From the NCBI GenBank assembly GCA_000320545.1, contig ADNK01003099.1, forward strand, positions 22,121-86,120: a DNA stretch of 64,000 nucleotides, read 5' to 3'. Each line of letters starts with the position of its first letter. Positions within the stretch are counted from its first letter, which is position 1. Below the pieces are notes generated by a model that was not told the DNA's origin, did not search any database, and saw only the letters and a list, made by a program, of their open reading frames with translations. This document shows positions 2 through 62,280 of this stretch, in pieces. A program made the position numbers and the translations under genes. Source of the DNA: Bigelowiella natans CCMP2755 (taxonomy: Eukaryota > Protista > Cercozoa).

Positions 2-3000
2 TGCGGATACTGCTCACGTAAAGGGAAACACACCGCTAAAGACTGCAGAGACAGGAAAGAAGGACGACCCAGGATGACGATCAGGCAGCTCAACGAACAC
101 TACGAGAAGTTAAAGAGAAAGAAAGGCAGAGGACAAGGATATAACAACAGCAAATGGCAAGGCAGCAACAACGGGAAGAACAATAAATATAAGAACAAAA
201 AGCAGAACAGTATCAATGCTATACAGCAGCAGATAAACGGAATATTAGATCACCTTAAGCAGGCGCCGACGAAGACAGCAGTACCAGCAACGCAGGACCA
301 AGACAAGCCCATGACCCTAGACGACATAAAGAACTTAGGAGTATGCAACATTAATGACGAAGACGCTAACAGGACTATCAAAGTTGCTATGACCAAGGTT
401 AAAGTTAAAGACAGCTACGGAGACTACAAGAAACTACCTGCCCTTTGGGATAGTGGCAGCATGCCGAAGTCCTTCATAAGCCTAAGCACAGTAAGAAGGT
501 TAGGACTATTGGATCAAGTGACTAAGAAAGAACGTAAATATGCTCAAGCAGACGGAAGCTCTTCCATGAAGACCGTCGGTGAGCTAATGCTAAAGCTACA
601 GATACCTGGCAGCGACGCGGAGACCCAAATCAAGACCCGAGTAGCCATGACTTTATCCATGGAACTACTCCTCGGACAGGATGCCCTAGAAAAATTAGGG
701 GGGATCATATCATTCTACAATCACAAGATATACTTTGCTAAGTTGCCAAAGAAGTCAGGCAGGACCATCAGCCAGAACATGATACGGCTTGACGAGTGGA
801 CCTCTGAGTCAAGCGTTAATGCGTTAGAGTTTATGGACCTAGCGGACAACAAGCTACCTACACCTACCGAGCTACGGAAGAAGAACCCCGGCAAGACCAT
901 CCGACAGATAACGGAGCTACTGGACAAGACCCCCCCAGCTGATGATTGGGATATCGACAAAGGCAAAAAGTACATTAATAAAATATTAAACGAGAAGTAC
1001 TCTGACATCACCAAGCCGACGACGAAGCCCTCCAGCAAGCTTACCCCAGTAAAGATCGAGCTAAAGAAGGGATACGAAGAGTGCATCATCAATGACCCAG
1101 AACATAGGCGACCGGAAGCGGACTGGGAAAAGATAGAGTGGCAGATCAATGAATGGGCAAAGGAAGGGAAGATAGAGCCAAGCAACTCACCATGGAACGT
1201 GAGACATGTGCTAGCTAAGAAACCTACTTACCCTTTCTTCCGCCTGGCGCACAACTTCATCCGCCACAACCGAGTAATAAAGAGGATCCAGACACCTACA
1301 CCAAGGATAGATGACGTTATTGAACACGTCATAGGATACAAATACTACTCTTCCCTAGATAAAAATGAATCATACATGCAGACACCCATCCACAAAACCT
1401 CCCGCCCCATTACCGCGTTCTCCAGCAGGCACAGGAAGTGGCACTTCGTCGTATTCCCTTACGGCCTAAGCATATCAGGGGATGCGTTCAGTAGTCAGAA
1501 CTACAGGGCATACACACATGATGGGATGGCGTCTGTGTTGTGGGTGTTTGTGTTTGTGTATGTGGATGATGACATAATATGTACCAACACAGTCGTCGCT
1601 CAGATCTTCCTCCTGGAAAATATATTTATTAGGTTTGCACACTTCGGTTTTACTATTAGACTGCAGAAGTGTACATTCCTAGCTACAAGAATCAAGTGGT
1701 GTGGATATTACCTGGAGCAAGGCCGCATCACCCCAAACCCCGAGAAAGTAGCAGCACTACAGCAAGCCCCTAAACCTAAGAATGCAAAGGAGTTAAAGTC
1801 ATTCTTGCAGACTGCAGCTTGGATACTACGTAGGTTCTCCCCTACCTACGCTAGGACTGCAGCTGCTTTTACTACTGCTTACCGGAAGGAGAACTCTGTA
1901 GGCCTCAGCTTCGCTAAGGTGTGGGCCAAGGCTGGCCTTGATGCCCACTTCGATAACCTAATAAAGTTATGCAGCAACACCCTATTGAATGCTAAGCTAG
2001 ACACTACTAGACCAGCTACCCTATGGACAGACTGGTCTAAGCTAGGTATGGCTGCTGTACTTACCCAAGACCAGCAGATCATACGGGTGTGGGGCAGGGC
2101 CTGCACAGCAGCTGAGGCCAAGTACAGCCCTACAAAAGGAGAGTATAAAGCCATGACTGAGGCGCAGAGGAAACTAAGATACTACCTGCTGTCGGTGCCC
2201 AGCTTCACCTTAATGACTGACCACAAGCCCCTCCTAGGCATCGACCGCAAGCTCGAAGCGCCTAACGATGAGTATGCAGCTATGAGGGCGGACACGGAAG
2301 AGTTTAGGGACAAGAGGACAGTGGTCTACGCACCAGGAGACAAGCAGCTTGCTGACTATTTCAGCAGGCTGTTCGAAAAGAAAGTCCCTACCCAGGTCAC
2401 CCCTATGGTTAACGCGATTACCTTCGAGGACGGCGACTTCCTGCCTGAGCCAGAGGAGCTCCAGCACCTTCAAGAACACCTGGATAAATACAAACACAAG
2501 CATGAGGTACTTAGTGATAGGATATATGTATACACTAATAATGTTAGGCGTACCTACGTGCCACGGCGGACCAGGGGAGCCCTTCTCTTTACCGCCCATG
2601 GACCTGCACACGTAGGAGAAAACCATATCACTGCTCTACTCTACCATTACTACTGGCCCTACAAGCTAAAAGAGATAAGGACATACCTGCGTGGCTGCAG
2701 GTGCTCCAGCTTGAAGGCGGCAGGCGTCGCCACCAAGGAGTCCAGCAAGAGCCGTGCATCTAAGAAAATCAAAGCAAGGAACTTCTTAGATATCGTGCAA
2801 ATTGATGTTTATAAGTACGATGGCTATCACTACCTTACCTTCGTTGATGTGGCCACTGGAAAGTGCTGGGTTAAAAAGATTATCAAGGTCAACGTTGCTA
2901 AGAAGAACAAAGGCTTATATAAGCAGAGGCTTACTAACTGCTACCGTACCTGGGAGTCTGAGCTCCAGGCTATCCCTGATGAAGTTAGCATAAACAAGAT

Positions 3001-3868
3001 ACCAAAGAAGTTACATGTGGATAATGAGACCTCTCTTCTACAGCTACCACACCCTAATATTGATGCCTCACCTGTATACTATGCCCAGTCCAACTCCAAG
3101 GTAGAGCGACTCCACCGCACCTTGGCCAACCTAAGCAGGATAAATAGCACCACACCAGACAAGATACAAGGGTTAGTAAACGACACCTTCACGTCTGGGG
3201 GAGGTATCAAGGATAAGGAGAGGGAAGAAGGCGACGACAACGACGACGATACCGAGAGCGAAGACGAGAAGGTCCCGTACGATGGCCGAGTTCTAAAGGA
3301 AGGACAGTATGTTAGGGCCAAGGTAAATCTGAGATCGAGAAATAAACAAGACCCCTTCTGGGGTGGCGTTGCAAAGGTTACCGAGAGGAAGGGGAGGAAG
3401 CAGTACTACATCTATGATGGGAACAGGGTCACCTTGCGCCACATCAGTCACCTAAAGAATTATGATATCGGTGAGAAGCTCCTAGAGGATGTTAAAGTAA
3501 ACCCTACTGTGTGGGAGCGAGCAATGCCTTGTTTAGGACCCCGACCTAAGTTCGATGTGGAATATGGAAACAATAAGGTCAGGGTGAACGACGATTGGCG
3601 CATGAAGATTGTCTATCTAGGCTACCCTGGATTACGAAATATGGAGAGGGTAGCTATGAAAATAAAGGACGGAAAATATCAGCTACTCTACCTAGCTGTT
3701 CCCGACTTACCCTTTGAGCACTGGTATAAGGTCCTGGGGGACCTTGATGCAGAGGGCTGGTATGGACACGAACCTAAGGACGAAGGTGAGTTCTGGGTAA
3801 GCGACAAAGGAGATAAGGTTAGAGAGGAATCTATTACCTGGTGGTTGGTGAAGTTCCGAAAGCGATGA
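2..3868 (+). CDS. Gag-Pol polyprotein (5'-partial): zinc knuckle, aspartic protease, RT, RNase H, integrase, extra C-terminal domain
   Basis: Frame is open from base 2: CGYCSRKGKHTAKDC (CCHC knuckle) is in frame with ORF 74-3868. Protease ALWDSGS; RT LDKNESY..PYGL..YVDD; RNase H TDWS..E..TDHKPL..ADYFSR; integrase H..H..CRC, QIDV, FVDVAT, HVDN..SNSKVER; SH3-like GPY/F region ending RHISHLKNY. Confidence 0.95.
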   Translation, partial: CGYCSRKGKHTAKDCRDRKEGRPRMTIRQLNEHYEKLKRKKGRGQGYNNSKWQGSNNGKNNKYKNKKQNSINAIQQQINGILDHLKQAPTKTAVPATQDQDKPMTLDDIKNLGVCNINDEDANRTIKVAMTKVKVKDSYGDYKKLPALWDSGSMPKSFISLSTVRRLGLLDQVTKKERKYAQADGSSSMKTVGELMLKLQIPGSDAETQIKTRVAMTLSMELLLGQDALEKLGGIISFYNHKIYFAKLPKKSGRTISQNMIRLDEWTSESSVNALEFMDLADNKLPTPTELRKKNPGKTIRQITELLDKTPPADDWDIDKGKKYINKILNEKYSDITKPTTKPSSKLTPVKIELKKGYEECIINDPEHRRPEADWEKIEWQINEWAKEGKIEPSNSPWNVRHVLAKKPTYPFFRLAHNFIRHNRVIKRIQTPTPRIDDVIEHVIGYKYYSSLDKNESYMQTPIHKTSRPITAFSSRHRKWHFVVFPYGLSISGDAFSSQNYRAYTHDGMASVLWVFVFVYVDDDIICTNTVVAQIFLLENIFIRFAHFGFTIRLQKCTFLATRIKWCGYYLEQGRITPNPEKVAALQQAPKPKNAKELKSFLQTAAWILRRFSPTYARTAAAFTTAYRKENSVGLSFAKVWAKAGLDAHFDNLIKLCSNTLLNAKLDTTRPATLWTDWSKLGMAAVLTQDQQIIRVWGRACTAAEAKYSPTKGEYKAMTEAQRKLRYYLLSVPSFTLMTDHKPLLGIDRKLEAPNDEYAAMRADTEEFRDKRTVVYAPGDKQLADYFSRLFEKKVPTQVTPMVNAITFEDGDFLPEPEELQHLQEHLDKYKHKHEVLSDRIYVYTNNVRRTYVPRRTRGALLFTAHGPAHVGENHITALLYHYYWPYKLKEIRTYLRGCRCSSLKAAGVATKESSKSRASKKIKARNFLDIVQIDVYKYDGYHYLTFVDVATGKCWVKKIIKVNVAKKNKGLYKQRLTNCYRTWESELQAIPDEVSINKIPKKLHVDNETSLLQLPHPNIDASPVYYAQSNSKVERLHRTLANLSRINSTTPDKIQGLVNDTFTSGGGIKDKEREEGDDNDDDTESEDEKVPYDGRVLKEGQYVRAKVNLRSRNKQDPFWGGVAKVTERKGRKQYYIYDGNRVTLRHISHLKNYDIGEKLLEDVKVNPTVWERAMPCLGPRPKFDVEYGNNKVRVNDDWRMKIVYLGYPGLRNMERVAMKIKDGKYQLLYLAVPDLPFEHWYKVLGDLDAEGWYGHEPKDEGEFWVSDKGDKVREESITWWLVKFRKR

Positions 3869-3919
3869 AGGTCTAAGGGAATAAGGAAGGAAGGAAGGAG
3901 CAACGTGACTTGGGGGAGG
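3867..3919 (+). promoter_or_regulatory. Polypurine tract region for plus-strand priming
   Basis: Purine run AAGGGAATAAGGAAGGAAGGAAGGAG, then GGGGGAGG immediately before the LTR-initial TG. Confidence 0.75.
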
Positions 3920-4245
3920 TGTAGCGCGTACCACTACGCGGGCACAAGTCACGTGCGACAACAAAGGGGTTGTCGCGGATATAGAATATAGATAACGTAG
4001 ATATTAATACAGCATAGGCACGTGGGTTCCGGCGGGACTCATGGCAGCACACCGGAAGTGTGCTGCCCCACGTGCGGCGGCATTCGCGAAAGCTTCGCGA
4101 ATGATTACGCAGTGCACGATTTAATAAAAATATAATCTTTAATAAAAATAAACACAACTCTTCAAAAGGAAGCAAACGTGCCTTTCCCCCCCCCTGCCTA
4201 CTTGTGCACGTAGCGCCTCGGCCTGTGAACACCTTACGCGCAACA
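3920..4245 (+). repeat. 3' LTR (326 bp)
   Basis: Starts TGTAGCGCGTA and ends TACGCGCAACA (11-bp inverted repeat, 1 mismatch). Directly follows the PPT. AT-rich TATA-like segment ~3978-4010; AATAAA signals at ~4123 and 4141. The 3' flank CGTTC would be the TSD. Confidence 0.85.
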
Positions 4246-4860
4246 CGTTCAGGTCATCCTTGCATCACACGATTCACACTTTGCTGTCAAAACTCAGACT
4301 TTGCATTTCAAAACTGAAGACGTGCATCTAATGATGAAAACAAGTCAGTTCAAATTTCAGATCCACATCGAACTTCTCCCGAAGCTGGAACACGAACGAA
4401 GCAATTCCAGCCCCTGCTGGTCTGCTGGCCCAGAAGAGTGCATGCAAGTGTCAATTTTGCAACAGCCACAACTCACATTCCTTTTTCTTTGGCAGTTTTG
4501 CTCTCACCGACAACTCAAAATGCCCAGGACGGCATTAGTTCTAGTGAATGATTAAATCGCAAAAAACGAAACACCAGAAACAGTGAATGAGAAATGGGGA
4601 TGGCACAGTCTGTCATCGGGTGCAAAGATCTTTGAAGACACGTTCTCAGCCTCACTCAATGCAGCGTCAATGGTAGCATTGCATTTCTGCATTGCGACAA
4701 GAAACAAAATGGAAAATCACTGCAGTACGCATGCAGATTCAAAAAGGAGCATAGATGACGATGACACGCGACTACAACTAACTTCGGCGAAGGCACGTCG
4801 TAGATCCGCTTTCTGGTTTTTCCATGCCATGCGAATTAGGTTCTTCGCGAAAAGCATTAC
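4246..4860. other. TpA-depleted decayed sequence flanking the retrotransposon
   Basis: By manual reading only one TA (CTAA) in 4246-4535. Later TAs are mostly CTA/TAG; CpG is retained. Confidence 0.7.
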
Positions 4861-4875
4861 TTTGTTCACACGTCA

Positions 4876-4917
<42 letters not shown>

Positions 4918-4929
4918 CTACCTTTCAGG

Positions 4930-6523
4930 AGCAGCACAAACACACAAGCGGAGGAGCAACTACACTCGAGACTCGCAAATTGGGTTTTGGTGATTTTACC
5001 TCATCGAAATTTCAAACGAGTCTGGTCGTTCGGAGCTAAGCATTGCGAGGGATGAAAAATATCCGTGCCTGTTCGCGCGCTTGGCTTCTTAGGAAGTAAC
5101 ATGTCGGGGCGACCACAAAACTCTTTCTTAGTTACCTGATTCAACGCAAAAACTATGGAGTTTGCCATGTCGTAAGATGAGATTAATGGTCATTAATTCA
5201 ATGATAGCGAAGCAAGTTCAGAGCTATCAGATTTATTTCAGATTTTCGTCATGAAGATGTGATGCTCCATCAAAGGGGAATTTTAAAATATGAAATGAGC
5301 TTTCGCATGTATTTGTAAATTCGGCCTTCATCTCATGATTGTAAATTTTCACTAGTATCTGCAAAAATTGACATTCTTATTGATCCTGTCTGACCCGTAA
5401 TATTTCTAATGGACGCAAAGAAGCATCCTGCACAATCCACGAAGTGTTAAATCTGCATCCCCTTCATCTTCTTTACCAATACTTAGACGCCATCAGACGA
5501 ATAATAAGTAACAAATCTCATAGATAGATAGAATCTTCTTTAACAATTCTTGAAAACTGTTAACGAGTACGCAACAATCTCGTTGACAGATAGAAGTTTT
5601 GCTGATTAATTATGAAATGCATTCCATAGAAATTACGTTTCAAATAAACTAATAATCAGCAAACAAATAACGTTGAGGGAAAATTGCTCTTTGTCTGGAA
5701 ACGAAACCGCGGATCCTCAAATCTCCGAATCTGGCCAGGATTCAAAAATTATGTACACCAGAAAGCAGAATGTAGTTGTTGAATCTGAGTGCTTATGCGG
5801 CCAGTTTCACAAGGTAGGTAAAATTCTATGAATCAACGACGACTAAAATAAAAATTGTGCAAGTCACTAAACGTACCCTTATCGAAATGCATGTGTTAGG
5901 GTTGGCCTGAGAACAGGATAAGGTATCTAATTTACAAAAATTCATCTAATGATAGGTTAAAAAGATGTATTTATGCAGAGACTTAAAGATATGCTACCAG
6001 GCTCTTGAAAGCATCAGATTATCATGTAAAGATCACATGGAGCTCGAAAAGGTTTTCAAGACATCTCATGGAATTAGTGCTCGGTACGGACAGACAACTT
6101 TTGCATGATCCCAATTCTGTTATTTTATGTTTTATTCACTCAAATTAATAGCTTAAAAGAAGGGCAGCCTAAATGGATCGAACTCATGCGGATACTGCTC
6201 AAGATCGTTGGTCGAGAAGACTCCTATGCTAAAGCGGTCATCTGAGACAAATTGAAATCCTATTTAGTGAATATTTCCATCCAGTGATAGAAGATTGCAA
6301 GGTTAACAATTGCAGACCAGAAATACTGAAGTAAAGTTAATGTATAGGCTGCTATAGAAGATCTTTGGAACTGGAAGAAGAAATTTGTTTCCATGCAGAA
6401 ATCGTAAAACTCATTAAGATTAAAATCAAAAAGTTTAAAAATATACATTTTCAGGTTCCTACGTCAACATGGTATTGGTGTTGCAAACTTTATGGAGCTG
6501 GTAATATGGAAACAAATGTTTTG
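4930..6523 (+). CDS. Possible spliced hypothetical protein or pseudogene with short introns
   Basis: Plausible exon peptides between GT..AG segments (DLKICYQALESIRLSCKDHMELEK, LKEGQPKWIELMRILLKIVGRED, AAIEDLWNWKKKF, FLRQHGIGVANFMELVIWKQMF*). No recognisable domain. Confidence 0.3.
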
Positions 6524-8899: not shown

Positions 8900-9300
8900 G
8901 CAAACATCCTCAGAGCTAGTCAGCTGCTAGCTAGAGCTGGCTAGTTGGAGGTCTAGAGGTGTGCTAGCATGTTGCGTCCGAGAAATTTATTTTTCGCTTA
9001 TCTAAAGATCAAACTGCAAACATTGCTTTCCAAAGGCTCCACATTTCATCATTTCATGCACAGCGGACATTCTAAACACTCACAATCATCAACAGCTAGA
9101 CAGGTGACCAGACAAATCTCTAGATCTAACTAACTAGCAGAAAGTGGATGAACTGTGACAGAATGATGCACATCTAGACATGCTAGCATGTGAGCTAGCA
9201 GCACGCTAGCACGCTCACAGCTGGACAGCCTCACTAGCTAGCTAGCTAGCTTGCAACTTGATACCAAAAATGTCATCGCGCTTGCGAAATGCACATTGTC
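8900..9300. other. CTAG-rich, otherwise TpA-depleted tract between convergent genes
   Basis: Roughly three quarters of TA dinucleotides lie in CTAG (manual count); (GCTA)n runs; rich in TGCA/CATG/AGCT. Confidence 0.8.
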
Positions 9301-24326: not shown

Positions 24327-24863
24327 TAGTACTATTTCGCTTCATAATAGCAGTGCCTGTGCATGCACGGCCATGTACACGCGTACATATCATATATCTG
24401 CTACACTATAGTATACACGTGCTAGGGTGTATATACATGTAATGTGTAAGTACACATGTGCGTATAATACGTCTGTACGAAGCAAATTAACAAAACTAGC
24501 AGCTACGTTATCCTGCTGAGAGTAGAACATACAGCATTGAATCCATAACAAGAAATGATGAATGAACAAGCAAGTGCATGTACACACGCCATGGTTACCA
24601 TGTAGCAGACGCAAGCATGTATCTAGACGGTTGCTTGCCAAGCAAGTAGCCACACATAGTGGGATGAAATTCATTTTCAAATCACAATTTTTCCATGAAA
24701 CACACGATTCACTGTGCAATCATGCATCGTCCTTCGGATCATGATCGGGCCCATTGATGGTGGAATCCGAACGTCACAAGCATGATGGCCTGTGGTGTGT
24801 CTTTTATTGCAACTGCACGTGTGCTGATAAGGGCTAGAGGGGAATGAAGCGACCGTGCATCCA

Positions 24864-26258
24864 TCATCGTTGCACAACCTTTTTATCGAATTCATTGAGT
24901 TGCTCGATGAATCCCTTGTTGGGGTCCACAATGGGTCTCTTTTCACGAACTAATGCAAGTATAAGTAATCGAAACTTCCAAGTGTTGCTACATCATGGAT
25001 GCGCGCCATCTGTGGTGTCGGCAATCTTGGCAAATTCATGCTGTCACGTGGACAATGCACAGAGGAAGATGCCACGTGCGATGCATGTGGCATCCTGAAG
25101 GACATGGATCATCTCCTGCAATGTCCAATGCATGGTCGAGAACAAATCAGATTGCGCAATCAAATGCGCGCGATCATGAATCGCAACGACGACACGAACC
25201 GGTTGACAAAGGCTGAAATTGAATCCAGAACTGCTGCGCGCAGTGCGCGGCAACATCGGTCGCATGAGGACGCTTTCAAATGCATGAAACACATTGTGGC
25301 AGAAACCAACAGATGCAACATTAGCGCTGTAGCCGCTGCATTGCACAGCTACATCAGGATGACCATTGAAAAAATTTGATTCTTCATCACATCCGTCTCA
25401 TAAGTAATCGTTCGTATGGCTAATAGAATGGATCAAATAACATTAATATTGGAAAATAAGAGCGTGAGTTAGGTTTCACATACCAAACTCAAGGGCTTCC
25501 TGTGCGCTGAGATTTTTCGTCTCCATCAGCCAAGCGCACACAACTGTCACTGATCGAGACACTCCCTATTAGGAAAGTAATAAAAGTGCCTGTTAATGCG
25601 GACTTCAGACTGCTTAGTGCCACACGAACCTGATGGCAGTGTATTAATATGCTTGGAAATTGACCGCGAGCTTTATCTCCAGTGGTTTCTAGCAGATTCG
25701 ATCTGTGATAAGCTGATCTTGCAGCTTTGATGAAATTGAAGCAAGCAGGAAAATGCATGATCAAGTTCTCGTGTTCATGGTCCTCCACCTCGATGACCTT
25801 GTAAGAAAACTCGGCCGGGAAGTAACAAGGGACATTGTCGCTAACATTAAGAATCCACCTTTACACAAAAGGATTGTCAACAGCACTTCTAAGTTCCTCA
25901 AATCATGTTTTTACTCGACTCTGTGTTGTATCAGAAGCTCGTGACTCGCCGCAGCTTTCTCGCCCCCCAGCAGTAGGTATGGAAGGATCTTCGAAACCTG
26001 CGGTTCTGAGAATGCAGCAAGTGTTTAGATCCATTACGAGCTGGCTAAGCTGTAACGGGGTAGTAGAAAACCTTTTTGCTCTCCCGATTGAATGTTGTCC
26101 AAGACTCTCTGACGTCGTTCTTCAAGTCTTCGTGTTTTATCCTCTTCACTCCGAGCCTTCTCCCTTCGCCGCTTCTGGAGTGCTTCCAAATACTCAGTAC
26201 GAACTCGTTCGACTTCTCTATCAAGATCGGACATGAATAAAGACATACATCCCCCCAT
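24864..26258 (-). CDS. Dual-specificity protein phosphatase (DUSP family), about 5 exons
   Basis: Spliced: MGGCMS..coiled coil../EPQVSKILPYLLLGGEKAA../WILNVSDNVPCYFP..IEVED..HFPACFNFI..ILIHCHQ/GVSRSVTVVCAWLM..AQEALEF/VREKRPIVDPNKGFIEQL. Canonical HCxxGxSRS and RPxxxPNxGF motifs. Confidence 0.92.
24972..25399 (+). mobile_element. 5'-truncated non-LTR retrotransposon (LINE) fragment, antisense in the last DUSP intron, with 11-bp TSD
   Basis: Encodes an ORF2 C-terminal CCHC (zf-RVT-like) motif CDACGILKDMDHLLQCP. Flanked by ATAAGTAATCG at 24961-24971 and 25400-25410. Lies inside intron 24950-25483. Confidence 0.85.
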
Positions 26259-29473: not shown

Positions 29474-29509
29474 TATATGTATGAATTCATTACATCCGTC
29501 TCATATGTA

Positions 29510-61199: not shown

Positions 61200-62280
61200 A
61201 TGCTATTTGCTAGTCATGCATTACGCCCCTAGAACTTGTGCTTTGCTTGTAATGTGACGCCATCATAACTAGATAGCAATGGTGGATTCTACTAGATCTA
61301 TGCTAGGCGAGCTAGCAAGCACACTGCTCACGTAAGCGATCTGTTAGTGATCGTGGCAAACCTAGAGGCATTTGTTTGTGCACAACCTGCATTGACAGTC
61401 TAACGTTCATCCTAGATGTGCGCGAGCGAGCGTCCACCATATGTTTGTCATTGCAATCGTTGCCTGATGGTCAGTGTGCGCAGTCCAAATGACGCTCCAT
61501 GGCGCAAGCTAGCGCTGCACAATTCATGCTAGCTACGCATGGCGCTACGAGTCGCAATGCAAGCAACACAAGCAAAGCAAGTTTGCATGTTTGAAATTGC
61601 ATGAGCTGATCACTGTCCAGTGGGAGATAAAGAGTGGCAACAAGCGTGCATCACACGTGCGTGTGCTGCTGAGCATGACATGTACTGTGTCCATGGTGAG
61701 AGCGTGCTCCTAGCTCCAGAGCTAGAGAGCTGGAGAGCTGTTCCGAGCCGCGCATGCATCGCACTTGCACCGCAACAAAAACCATGCTAGCATGGTAGCT
61801 AGCTAGCATGCATGTTGCAGGCACTGCAGGCTAGCAGGGACCTTGCCAGCAGCATCGCTAGATTTGGTGCACACAATGCATGCTCTGCATGGATGCCAGC
61901 TTGCAAAAAGCACCTGGAACGTGCGCGTCTCTGGCTAGCTAGCTAGCTAGGTGCGTGCTGGCGTGCTAGTGTGCACTCGCGATCAAAAGGCATCTGTGTT
62001 GATCAGCATCGTTCCCAACAAAGATGATCTTGGCAGTGCACCCCTCAAACCTAGCACACAAACTTGTCCTTTGATGACAATGTGTGGTACACCCTAGCAC
62101 CCCAATTCATTGAATTGGGTGAATGGATTTGTGCACAGTTGCTTTTGATCCGAAACGGCCGCAAGCCGCACACAAAAGACAAAGACAAAGATAATGATGA
62201 AGAACAACGTTCCCAAAGTGTGGCAAGACACTTGCAATGCACGAAACACAGTGCCTCGAACTAGCTCTAGTGAGGACTAA
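61200..62280. other. CTAG-rich, otherwise TpA-depleted tract between convergent genes
   Basis: In 61440-62280 about two thirds of the few TA dinucleotides are in CTAG (manual count); abundant TGCA, CATG and CG. Confidence 0.85.

Follow-up and report, generated by a model that had tools for sequence, protein, structure and literature searches.

The window analysed here, a stretch of 64,000 nucleotides of Bigelowiella natans DNA, contains at 24972-25399 (+ strand) a 428-bp LINE fragment bounded by two copies of an 11-bp target-site duplication (TSD), ATAAGTAATCG, at 24961-24971 and 25400-25410 (+ strand), both of which keep their two TA intact. Four TpA occur in the fragment where base composition predicts 27.2, and none in the 331 bp from 24991 to 25321, where 19.2 would be expected and which form the window's longest gap free of TA; these counts agree with the original prediction, as does the abundance of CpG, which was counted 26 times. 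Since none of 20,000 shuffles of the fragment (0/20,000) reached four TpA or fewer, and the Poisson probability is 5e-6 even taking the window-wide TA observed/expected ratio (o/e) of 0.79, the depletion is not attributable to chance. The four survivors, at 24989 (CTAC), 25322 (TTAG), 25330 (GTAG) and 25350 (CTAC), all lie in CTA or TAG context and are also retained in five saturated LINE copies. An ORF2 C-terminus remnant of 126 aa spans 24999-25379 (+ strand), ends in the stop TGA at 25377-25379 and has the predicted 1 Tyr, 7 Cys, 6 His and 8 Met. It carries a CCHC-type zinc knuckle, C-x2-C-x7-H-x3-C, at 25077-25124 (+ strand), which is conserved in two outgroup families, and near it a His at 25131 (+ strand) where both of these families have Tyr. 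The assignment of this region to zf-RVT was not sustained, as a Pfam search of the 126-aa peptide gave neither zf-RVT nor any other real match; what is visible is the knuckle.

The TSDs and flanks had been described as TA-normal, which holds for the TSDs and for the downstream flank (25411-25710; 21 TA against 25 expected) but not for the upstream flank (24661-24960; 5 against 22, o/e 0.22). The latter is rich in TG and CA, and a genome-wide search for other copies of it returned only the self-match; it is probably an older relic of the TpA mutation process described below.

Searching the genome with the fragment gave more than 40 matches, of which four others were 100% identical (L001, L002, L004 and L005), and the upstream sequence common to the identical copies identifies the fragment as the 3' tail of a 5'-truncated element. 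The full-length element measures 4,958 bp and has a 486-aa open frame (ORF1) and a 1,179-aa open frame (ORF2), the latter with APE endonuclease (PF14529) and reverse transcriptase (RT; PF00078) domains; at least eight full-length copies are alike at 99.7-99.9%. Positions in the element are given along one natural full-length copy, on which the fragment occupies 4530-4957, and the copies used for comparison were picked by similarity score rather than by random sampling. An ORF1, APE and RT within ORF2, 5'-truncated copies with a common 3' end, and TSDs place the element among the LINEs. Two ORFs, 5' truncation and TSDs are thus shared with non-LTR retrotransposons (APE, RT, C-terminal CCHC); unlike typical members, the B. 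natans LINE has no poly(A). Its insertion sites are alternating purine-pyrimidine tracts of CA, TG and TA units (flanks of L001-L050; window 24330-24480), and these tracts resemble (TA)n microsatellites that the same TpA process may have worn down.

Only three relatives of this LINE were found. A sister family, 70% identical, comes from marine metagenomes, and a B. natans protein (jgi Bigna1) belongs to its cluster; a 3' stub of the sister family lies at 29486-29500 in the window, is followed by (TA)n and has TA where the fragment's family has CA. In the distant relative P0002 (L052, L053), whose tail is not TA-poor, an RNase H-like insertion recognised by eye follows the RT and hints at an affinity with the I group. 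Furthermore, two CT..AC segments (L031:6211-6294 and 6324-6423) are skipped in contigs of a probable RNA run and represent spliced antisense transcripts across LINE ORF2. Additionally, an 86-bp GT..AG segment in the tail (L031:8110-8197) is absent from DNA contigs of three runs, which suggests that one copy was retrotransposed from spliced RNA.

The original prediction held that TpA had been erased at this insertion itself, and this has to be abandoned. The fragment bears no private change relative to its four identical copies, and TA is kept in both TSDs. Because it is 100% identical to these copies, its TA loss was inherited from the master and did not occur locally; the match between erasure and insertion boundaries reflects a tail that had been purged before it was copied to this site. 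Thus, the fragment represents a recent insertion, truncated at its 5' end and not mutated since, of an active LINE from which TpA had already disappeared in the final ~700 bp. Along the element as it stands in the active family, TpA o/e starts at 0.3-0.4 over the first 500 bp, lies at 0.5-1.0 over 501-4250 and falls to 0.06-0.2 in the tail. A TA-free active family had been named in advance as a result that would speak against hypermutation; the active family is TA-free in this segment, but sister copies show that the master lost its TpA by the same process.

The evidence for this process comes from comparing LINE copies with their master, which revealed a strong TpA bias. Among 396 TpA in five older copies, 197 became TG and 151 CA, 36 were kept, 4 became CG and 8 changed otherwise; conversion to TpG or CpA, independent in each copy, therefore accounts for 348/396, and the predicted change on both DNA strands is borne out. 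In L034, 140/147 TpA were converted, 70 to TG and 70 to CA. Counted by strand, L032 has 69 transitions at 410 TA sites against 0 at 1,609 AA plus GA sites, and L033 has 60/136 against 1/585. AA sites were changed in 0/923 (L032) and 1/315 (L033) cases, transversions are almost absent, and CpG transitions are rare (1/416 in L032 and 1/194 in L033). Conversion thus reaches ~90% saturation while A or T elsewhere is hardly affected. At sites hit in two or more copies, 50/71 show both the TG and the CA outcome, for which an ancestral TA is the sole one-step explanation. In pairwise comparisons of saturated copies, the same outcome was found at only 377/669 sites, which rejects shared descent as the main cause, and runs tests found the order of TG and CA along each copy to be random, which rejects strand processivity.

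The RT motif also fixes the direction of change: two outgroup families have IYCDD, and its Tyr is lost in 6/6 mutated copies, which read MCCDD, VCCDD, TCCDD or MHCDD. Moreover, the two TSD copies of single insertions differ between upstream and downstream by TA>TG in L034, by TA>CA in L033 and by both in L024. Destruction of the RT Tyr together with mutation of one TSD copy means that the DNA mutated after insertion, and on both strands. Accordingly, TpA conversion in the LINE copies is a post-insertion, DNA-level change that affects both strands of the element, one strand per site and at random by site.

The same signature can be read back into the tail of the master. At ten sites, most of them inside the TpA-free run, sister copies keep TA or show the opposite outcome (25042, 25073, 25096, 25129, 25133, 25193, 25297 and 25316, plus 25377 and 25388 beyond the run). 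The ORF2 remnant stops with TGA in the fragment, whereas 9 sister copies have TAA at this codon and 4 have CAA. The silent change NNT/A to NNC/A stands at 2:40 in the tail against 20:9 in the control (p 7e-9), with p 0.28 upstream. As for the proposal that His, Cys and Met are a hypermutation signature, two motifs fit, since CPMH of the fragment corresponds to CRKY and CPEY in two outgroups and NRCN to NRYN in the sister family; but most of these residues are common to the sister family, and therefore the amino-acid counts are mostly no sign of hypermutation.

It could be argued that no special process is at work and that RIP or CpG decay in reversed polarity, selection against TA, or assembly error produced the pattern. 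The fragment does represent the state of the active family, and TpA is mildly under-represented in the window at large. However, the double outcomes at 50/71 sites and the rarity of CpG transitions reject CpG decay and reversed polarity, the catalytic Tyr is destroyed, and silent NNT/A is purged only in the tail. In addition, when contigs of three DNA runs (2011, 2025) are compared with the element, A>G and T>C outnumber all other variants; in one example they count 81 and 62, with C>T at 32 and G>A at 27. This evidence consists of run contigs rather than raw reads, and such an excess in independent read sets is not an assembly error. We therefore give this explanation hardly any credence.

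Conversion also follows a context rule: a C before or a G after the TA slows it. In saturated copies, TA was kept at 11/105 sites with C before or G after against 5/259 otherwise (p 8e-4), and in L032 at 15/23 against 6/48 (p 1e-5). CTAG makes up 26/61 of the survivors in TA-free tracts, 7.4-fold over its background share. The predicted sparing of CTA and TAG thus stands as a partial protection, strongest for CTAG, but not as a complete one, as CTA and TAG sites are also converted. Elsewhere in the window, CTAG constitutes 17/24 TpA at 8900-9300 and 26/45 TpA at 61200-62280.

The original prediction knew of no described system with this specificity, but the same spectrum has been measured in B. 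natans itself by Mettrop et al. (bioRxiv 10.64898/2026.01.13.699255). In that preprint, two viral inserts mutated ~1000-fold faster than the rest in mutation-accumulation (MA) lines, almost only by TpA>TpG/CpA; one of them, a 186-kb NCLDV insert, is single-copy. TpA-poor genes with RT, endonuclease and DDE domains served there to infer transposon targets, sites with a depth more than twice the mean were left out, and an ADAT2/3 pair was proposed as the agent. The LINE copies share with these viral inserts the organism, the spectrum, the involvement of both strands, the regional character and the disfavouring of TAG. A hand count of the preprint's mutation table gave ~20/211 in TAG context, set against 23% of the TA strand-sites of our window, a comparison that is supportive rather than decisive because the background comes from another region. 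From the preprint's numbers we derived a rate of ~1.1e-5 hits per TpA per generation, at which a copy would be saturated in ~2e5 generations with <1 background change in 2 kb, in agreement with L033. Hence, LINE hypermutation is the process that Mettrop et al. described in viral inserts, and LINEs are a new target class supported by direct evidence. Insofar as the preprint is available to us, it holds no copy-versus-master analysis, CTA/TAG/CTAG sparing, spread into TSDs and flanks, 3' front or wild data; relative to that text, the LINE evidence, the context rule, the flank spread, the 3' front and the lack of detectable hypoxanthine-repair genes are new.

Editing during retrotransposition, with an ADAR-like enzyme acting on RNA and a second activity on cDNA, would imply that copies were born mutated. 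Such an origin would suit the near-uniform saturation of five copies, the spliced antisense contigs over the LINE in the probable RNA run, and the preference of ADAR for a 5' U as stated in the preprint (bioRxiv 10.64898/2026.01.13.699255). On the contrary, host-derived TSDs and flanks are mutated and the TSD asymmetry largely refutes it; furthermore, the hits fall on the two strands in equal measure and at random, TAG sites are disfavoured, and, as the preprint reports, integrated DNA acquires such changes in the course of MA. ADAR itself edits A to I on RNA, on one strand per transcript, and favours UAG, whereas the change in the LINE copies affects both strands and the flanks and disfavours TAG; the genome has a single A_deamin locus. 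Editing of this kind is thus very improbable.

TpA conversion forms regional tracts that cross element boundaries into TSDs and flanks: the loss has sharp ends, lies in foreign or mobile DNA and extends some hundreds of base pairs into the flanks. Upstream of L034, L033 and L050, the TA that survive within 300 bp are almost only CTA or TAG. On the downstream side of L034 and L033, TA is plentiful right from the start of the flank, an asymmetry that comes from few copies. The full-length copy L032 is mutated at both ends, with 0/95 TA changed in 901-2700 and 47/63 in 3001-4200, and its upstream neighbour is a TA-free tract. An LTR copy in L023 had 10/11 TA converted relative to the LTR in the window. 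Pfam searches of the ORFs of seven TA-free neighbour tracts and of two window ORFs gave nothing above cut-off.

Young LINE copies are mutated almost only within the last 1 kb: among 22 of them, 14 distinct events fell on 269 exposures at 3901-4400 against 1 on 1,632 at 701-3900 (p 1e-11). Wholesale gene conversion from saturated donors is disfavoured as the source of these hits, as unconverted TA lies between hits in L046. The tail of the sister family is also purged (TA o/e 0.25), and 10/16 differences among six marine-metagenome contigs of this family are of the TA type. In these wild contigs (L054-L058), 4/6 of the non-TA differences are also A>G or T>C, which hints at weak activity outside TpA or at a general bias.

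This 3' front could arise if the same chemistry were targeted by homology, a true reverse RIP in which more copies attract more hits. The young-copy hits do fall where the summed contig depth rises, from ~1,200-2,000 in the LINE body to 3,800-4,800 and then >100,000 in the last bin, values that are not copy number. A purged tail is common to two families that are 70% identical and is lacking in a more distant LINE family, and the spread into flanks resembles the leakage of RIP. Against this stand the single-copy NCLDV insert mutated in MA lines, as reported in the preprint, and a Ty3/Gypsy element in the window. The pol ORF of the latter (74-3868) is intact, 1,264 aa long, TA-rich (o/e 1.14) and CpG-poor (0.62), and its LTR lies at 3919-4245. 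At least 39 copies, compared pairwise only, are identical over 3,795 bp, with 278 TA each and no TpA hit; at the rate of 1.1e-5 derived from the preprint, they would gain ~1 hit per 8 generations, although a very young age, or their collapse during assembly, may account for this. The element is a very recent burst, spared TpA mutation so far. Repeat targeting in the manner of RIP, as originally predicted, is therefore not established, and we consider targeting by homology unlikely. A Pfam search of the Gypsy integrase gave no Dam-like domain match. Adjoining the LTR, the interval 4246-4860 is a TA-poor relic (o/e 0.26) whose survivors are mostly CTA or TAG.

Fungal RIP turns C into T (CpA into TpA in Neurospora), and so creates TpA; it requires homology pairing, the RID/DIM-2 methyltransferase and a sexual cycle. 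Dinucleotide-specific transitions on both strands, saturated transposon copies and leakage into flanks are common to RIP and the B. natans process. Nevertheless, the latter changes A to G, destroys TpA and, as reported in the preprint, hits a single-copy insert in clonal lines; C:G to T:A transitions with a gain of TpA, by which RIP is recognised, run opposite to the direction seen in the LINE copies. With AID/APOBEC3, the likeness is a context-specific deaminase hypermutation that defends against retroelements. These enzymes convert C to U on single-stranded cDNA, with strand bias and before integration, whereas the LINE changes are A:T>G:C, symmetric and subsequent to integration. No other A:T-to-G:C genome defence was found in the literature searched.

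The reading that we favour, and regard as probable, jointly invokes recruitment to silenced or foreign chromatin, spread in cis, and selection that leaves tail-hit masters active. A host adenine deaminase of the TadA/ADAT2 fold would be recruited to such chromatin and would deaminate adenine in 5'-TA, and the resulting hypoxanthine would be copied as if it were G. One strand would be altered per site and the motif thereby destroyed, and the CG outcome would be rare because deamination of one strand removes the TA. The lesion would persist, perhaps through missing AAG/MPG and endonuclease V, and the mutated domain would spread in cis and serve as genome defence. Masters hit in the endonuclease or RT region would die, and hits in the tolerant tail would be passed on; as a consequence, active lineages would come to have purged tails, which each truncated copy inherits.

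The search for TadA/ADAT-like deaminases called for by the original prediction yielded six candidate loci of the TadA/CDA fold, namely C980, C570, C3623, C3286, C1679 and C3588, although TadA-fold genes occur in nearly all genomes; Bn78255 and Bn77986 are the candidates of the preprint. TadA-derived editors favour 5'-TA, and A-to-I deamination of DNA by enzymes of the TadA/ADAT2-3 kind (engineered ABE; BjADAT2/3) would give the observed change. Amphioxus BjADAT2, however, which is active on DNA, favours GAA and TCG sites, acts preferentially in hairpin loops and can deaminate C as well (PMC10354150). This spectrum is unlike that of B. natans, and the enzyme is not known to serve in genomic defence. 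Exon-by-exon searches of this intron-rich genome gave no match to AAG/MPG (PF02245) or EndoV (PF04493) with positive controls, and none to Piwi (PF02171), all weak negatives. If these are true absences, the first two bear on the persistence of the lesion and the third on guidance by small RNAs. The genome also has five C5-methyltransferase loci. One intronless locus, C1391:110667-111599, gives a full-length C5 DNA methyltransferase match (E 2e-76) and is possibly of viral or bacterial origin.

As to which base is attacked, A>G on one strand equals T>C on the other in sequence, and a lesion on thymine (TET/JBP-type oxidised T) or a Y-family polymerase of the Pol eta/iota type that places G opposite T would fit as well. 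In somatic hypermutation, A/T mutations at WA motifs are the work of Pol eta; yet WA includes AA, where LINE copies show next to no change (0/923 in L032 and 1/315 in L033), and transversions are almost absent. The oxidised thymine put forward in the original prediction found no backing in the genome, where an exon-by-exon search gave no Tet_JBP match, an uncontrolled and weak negative. We doubt that thymine or a polymerase is the origin. The favoured chromatin and deaminase reading also has to accommodate that the 3' front follows the 3'-ward rise in related sequence, which homology sensing fits equally.

A bolder form of this reading, possible though rather doubtful, is a dose-sensitive, cis-spreading reverse RIP. 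A natural deaminase of adenine in chromosomal DNA would act at high-copy transposon ends and viral inserts, and the genome would be one without hypoxanthine repair because AAG/MPG and EndoV were lost. Starting at the 3' end, the enzyme would ratchet TpA out of active LINE masters until they die or survive as TA-free tails.

These results emphasize the value of the LINE family as direct proof that transposons are targets, which the preprint inferred from composition only. With many dated copies and a known ancestral state at ~200 TpA sites, the family is a natural assay of the process. Any candidate enzyme must reproduce the context rule, by which C before or G after protects, CTAG most of all, and the positional rule, a 3' front with spread across TSDs, allows homology sensing to be told apart from chromatin targeting. 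Should the agent prove to be a deaminase of chromosomal adenine, B. natans would offer a rare example from nature of what adenine base editors were engineered to do.
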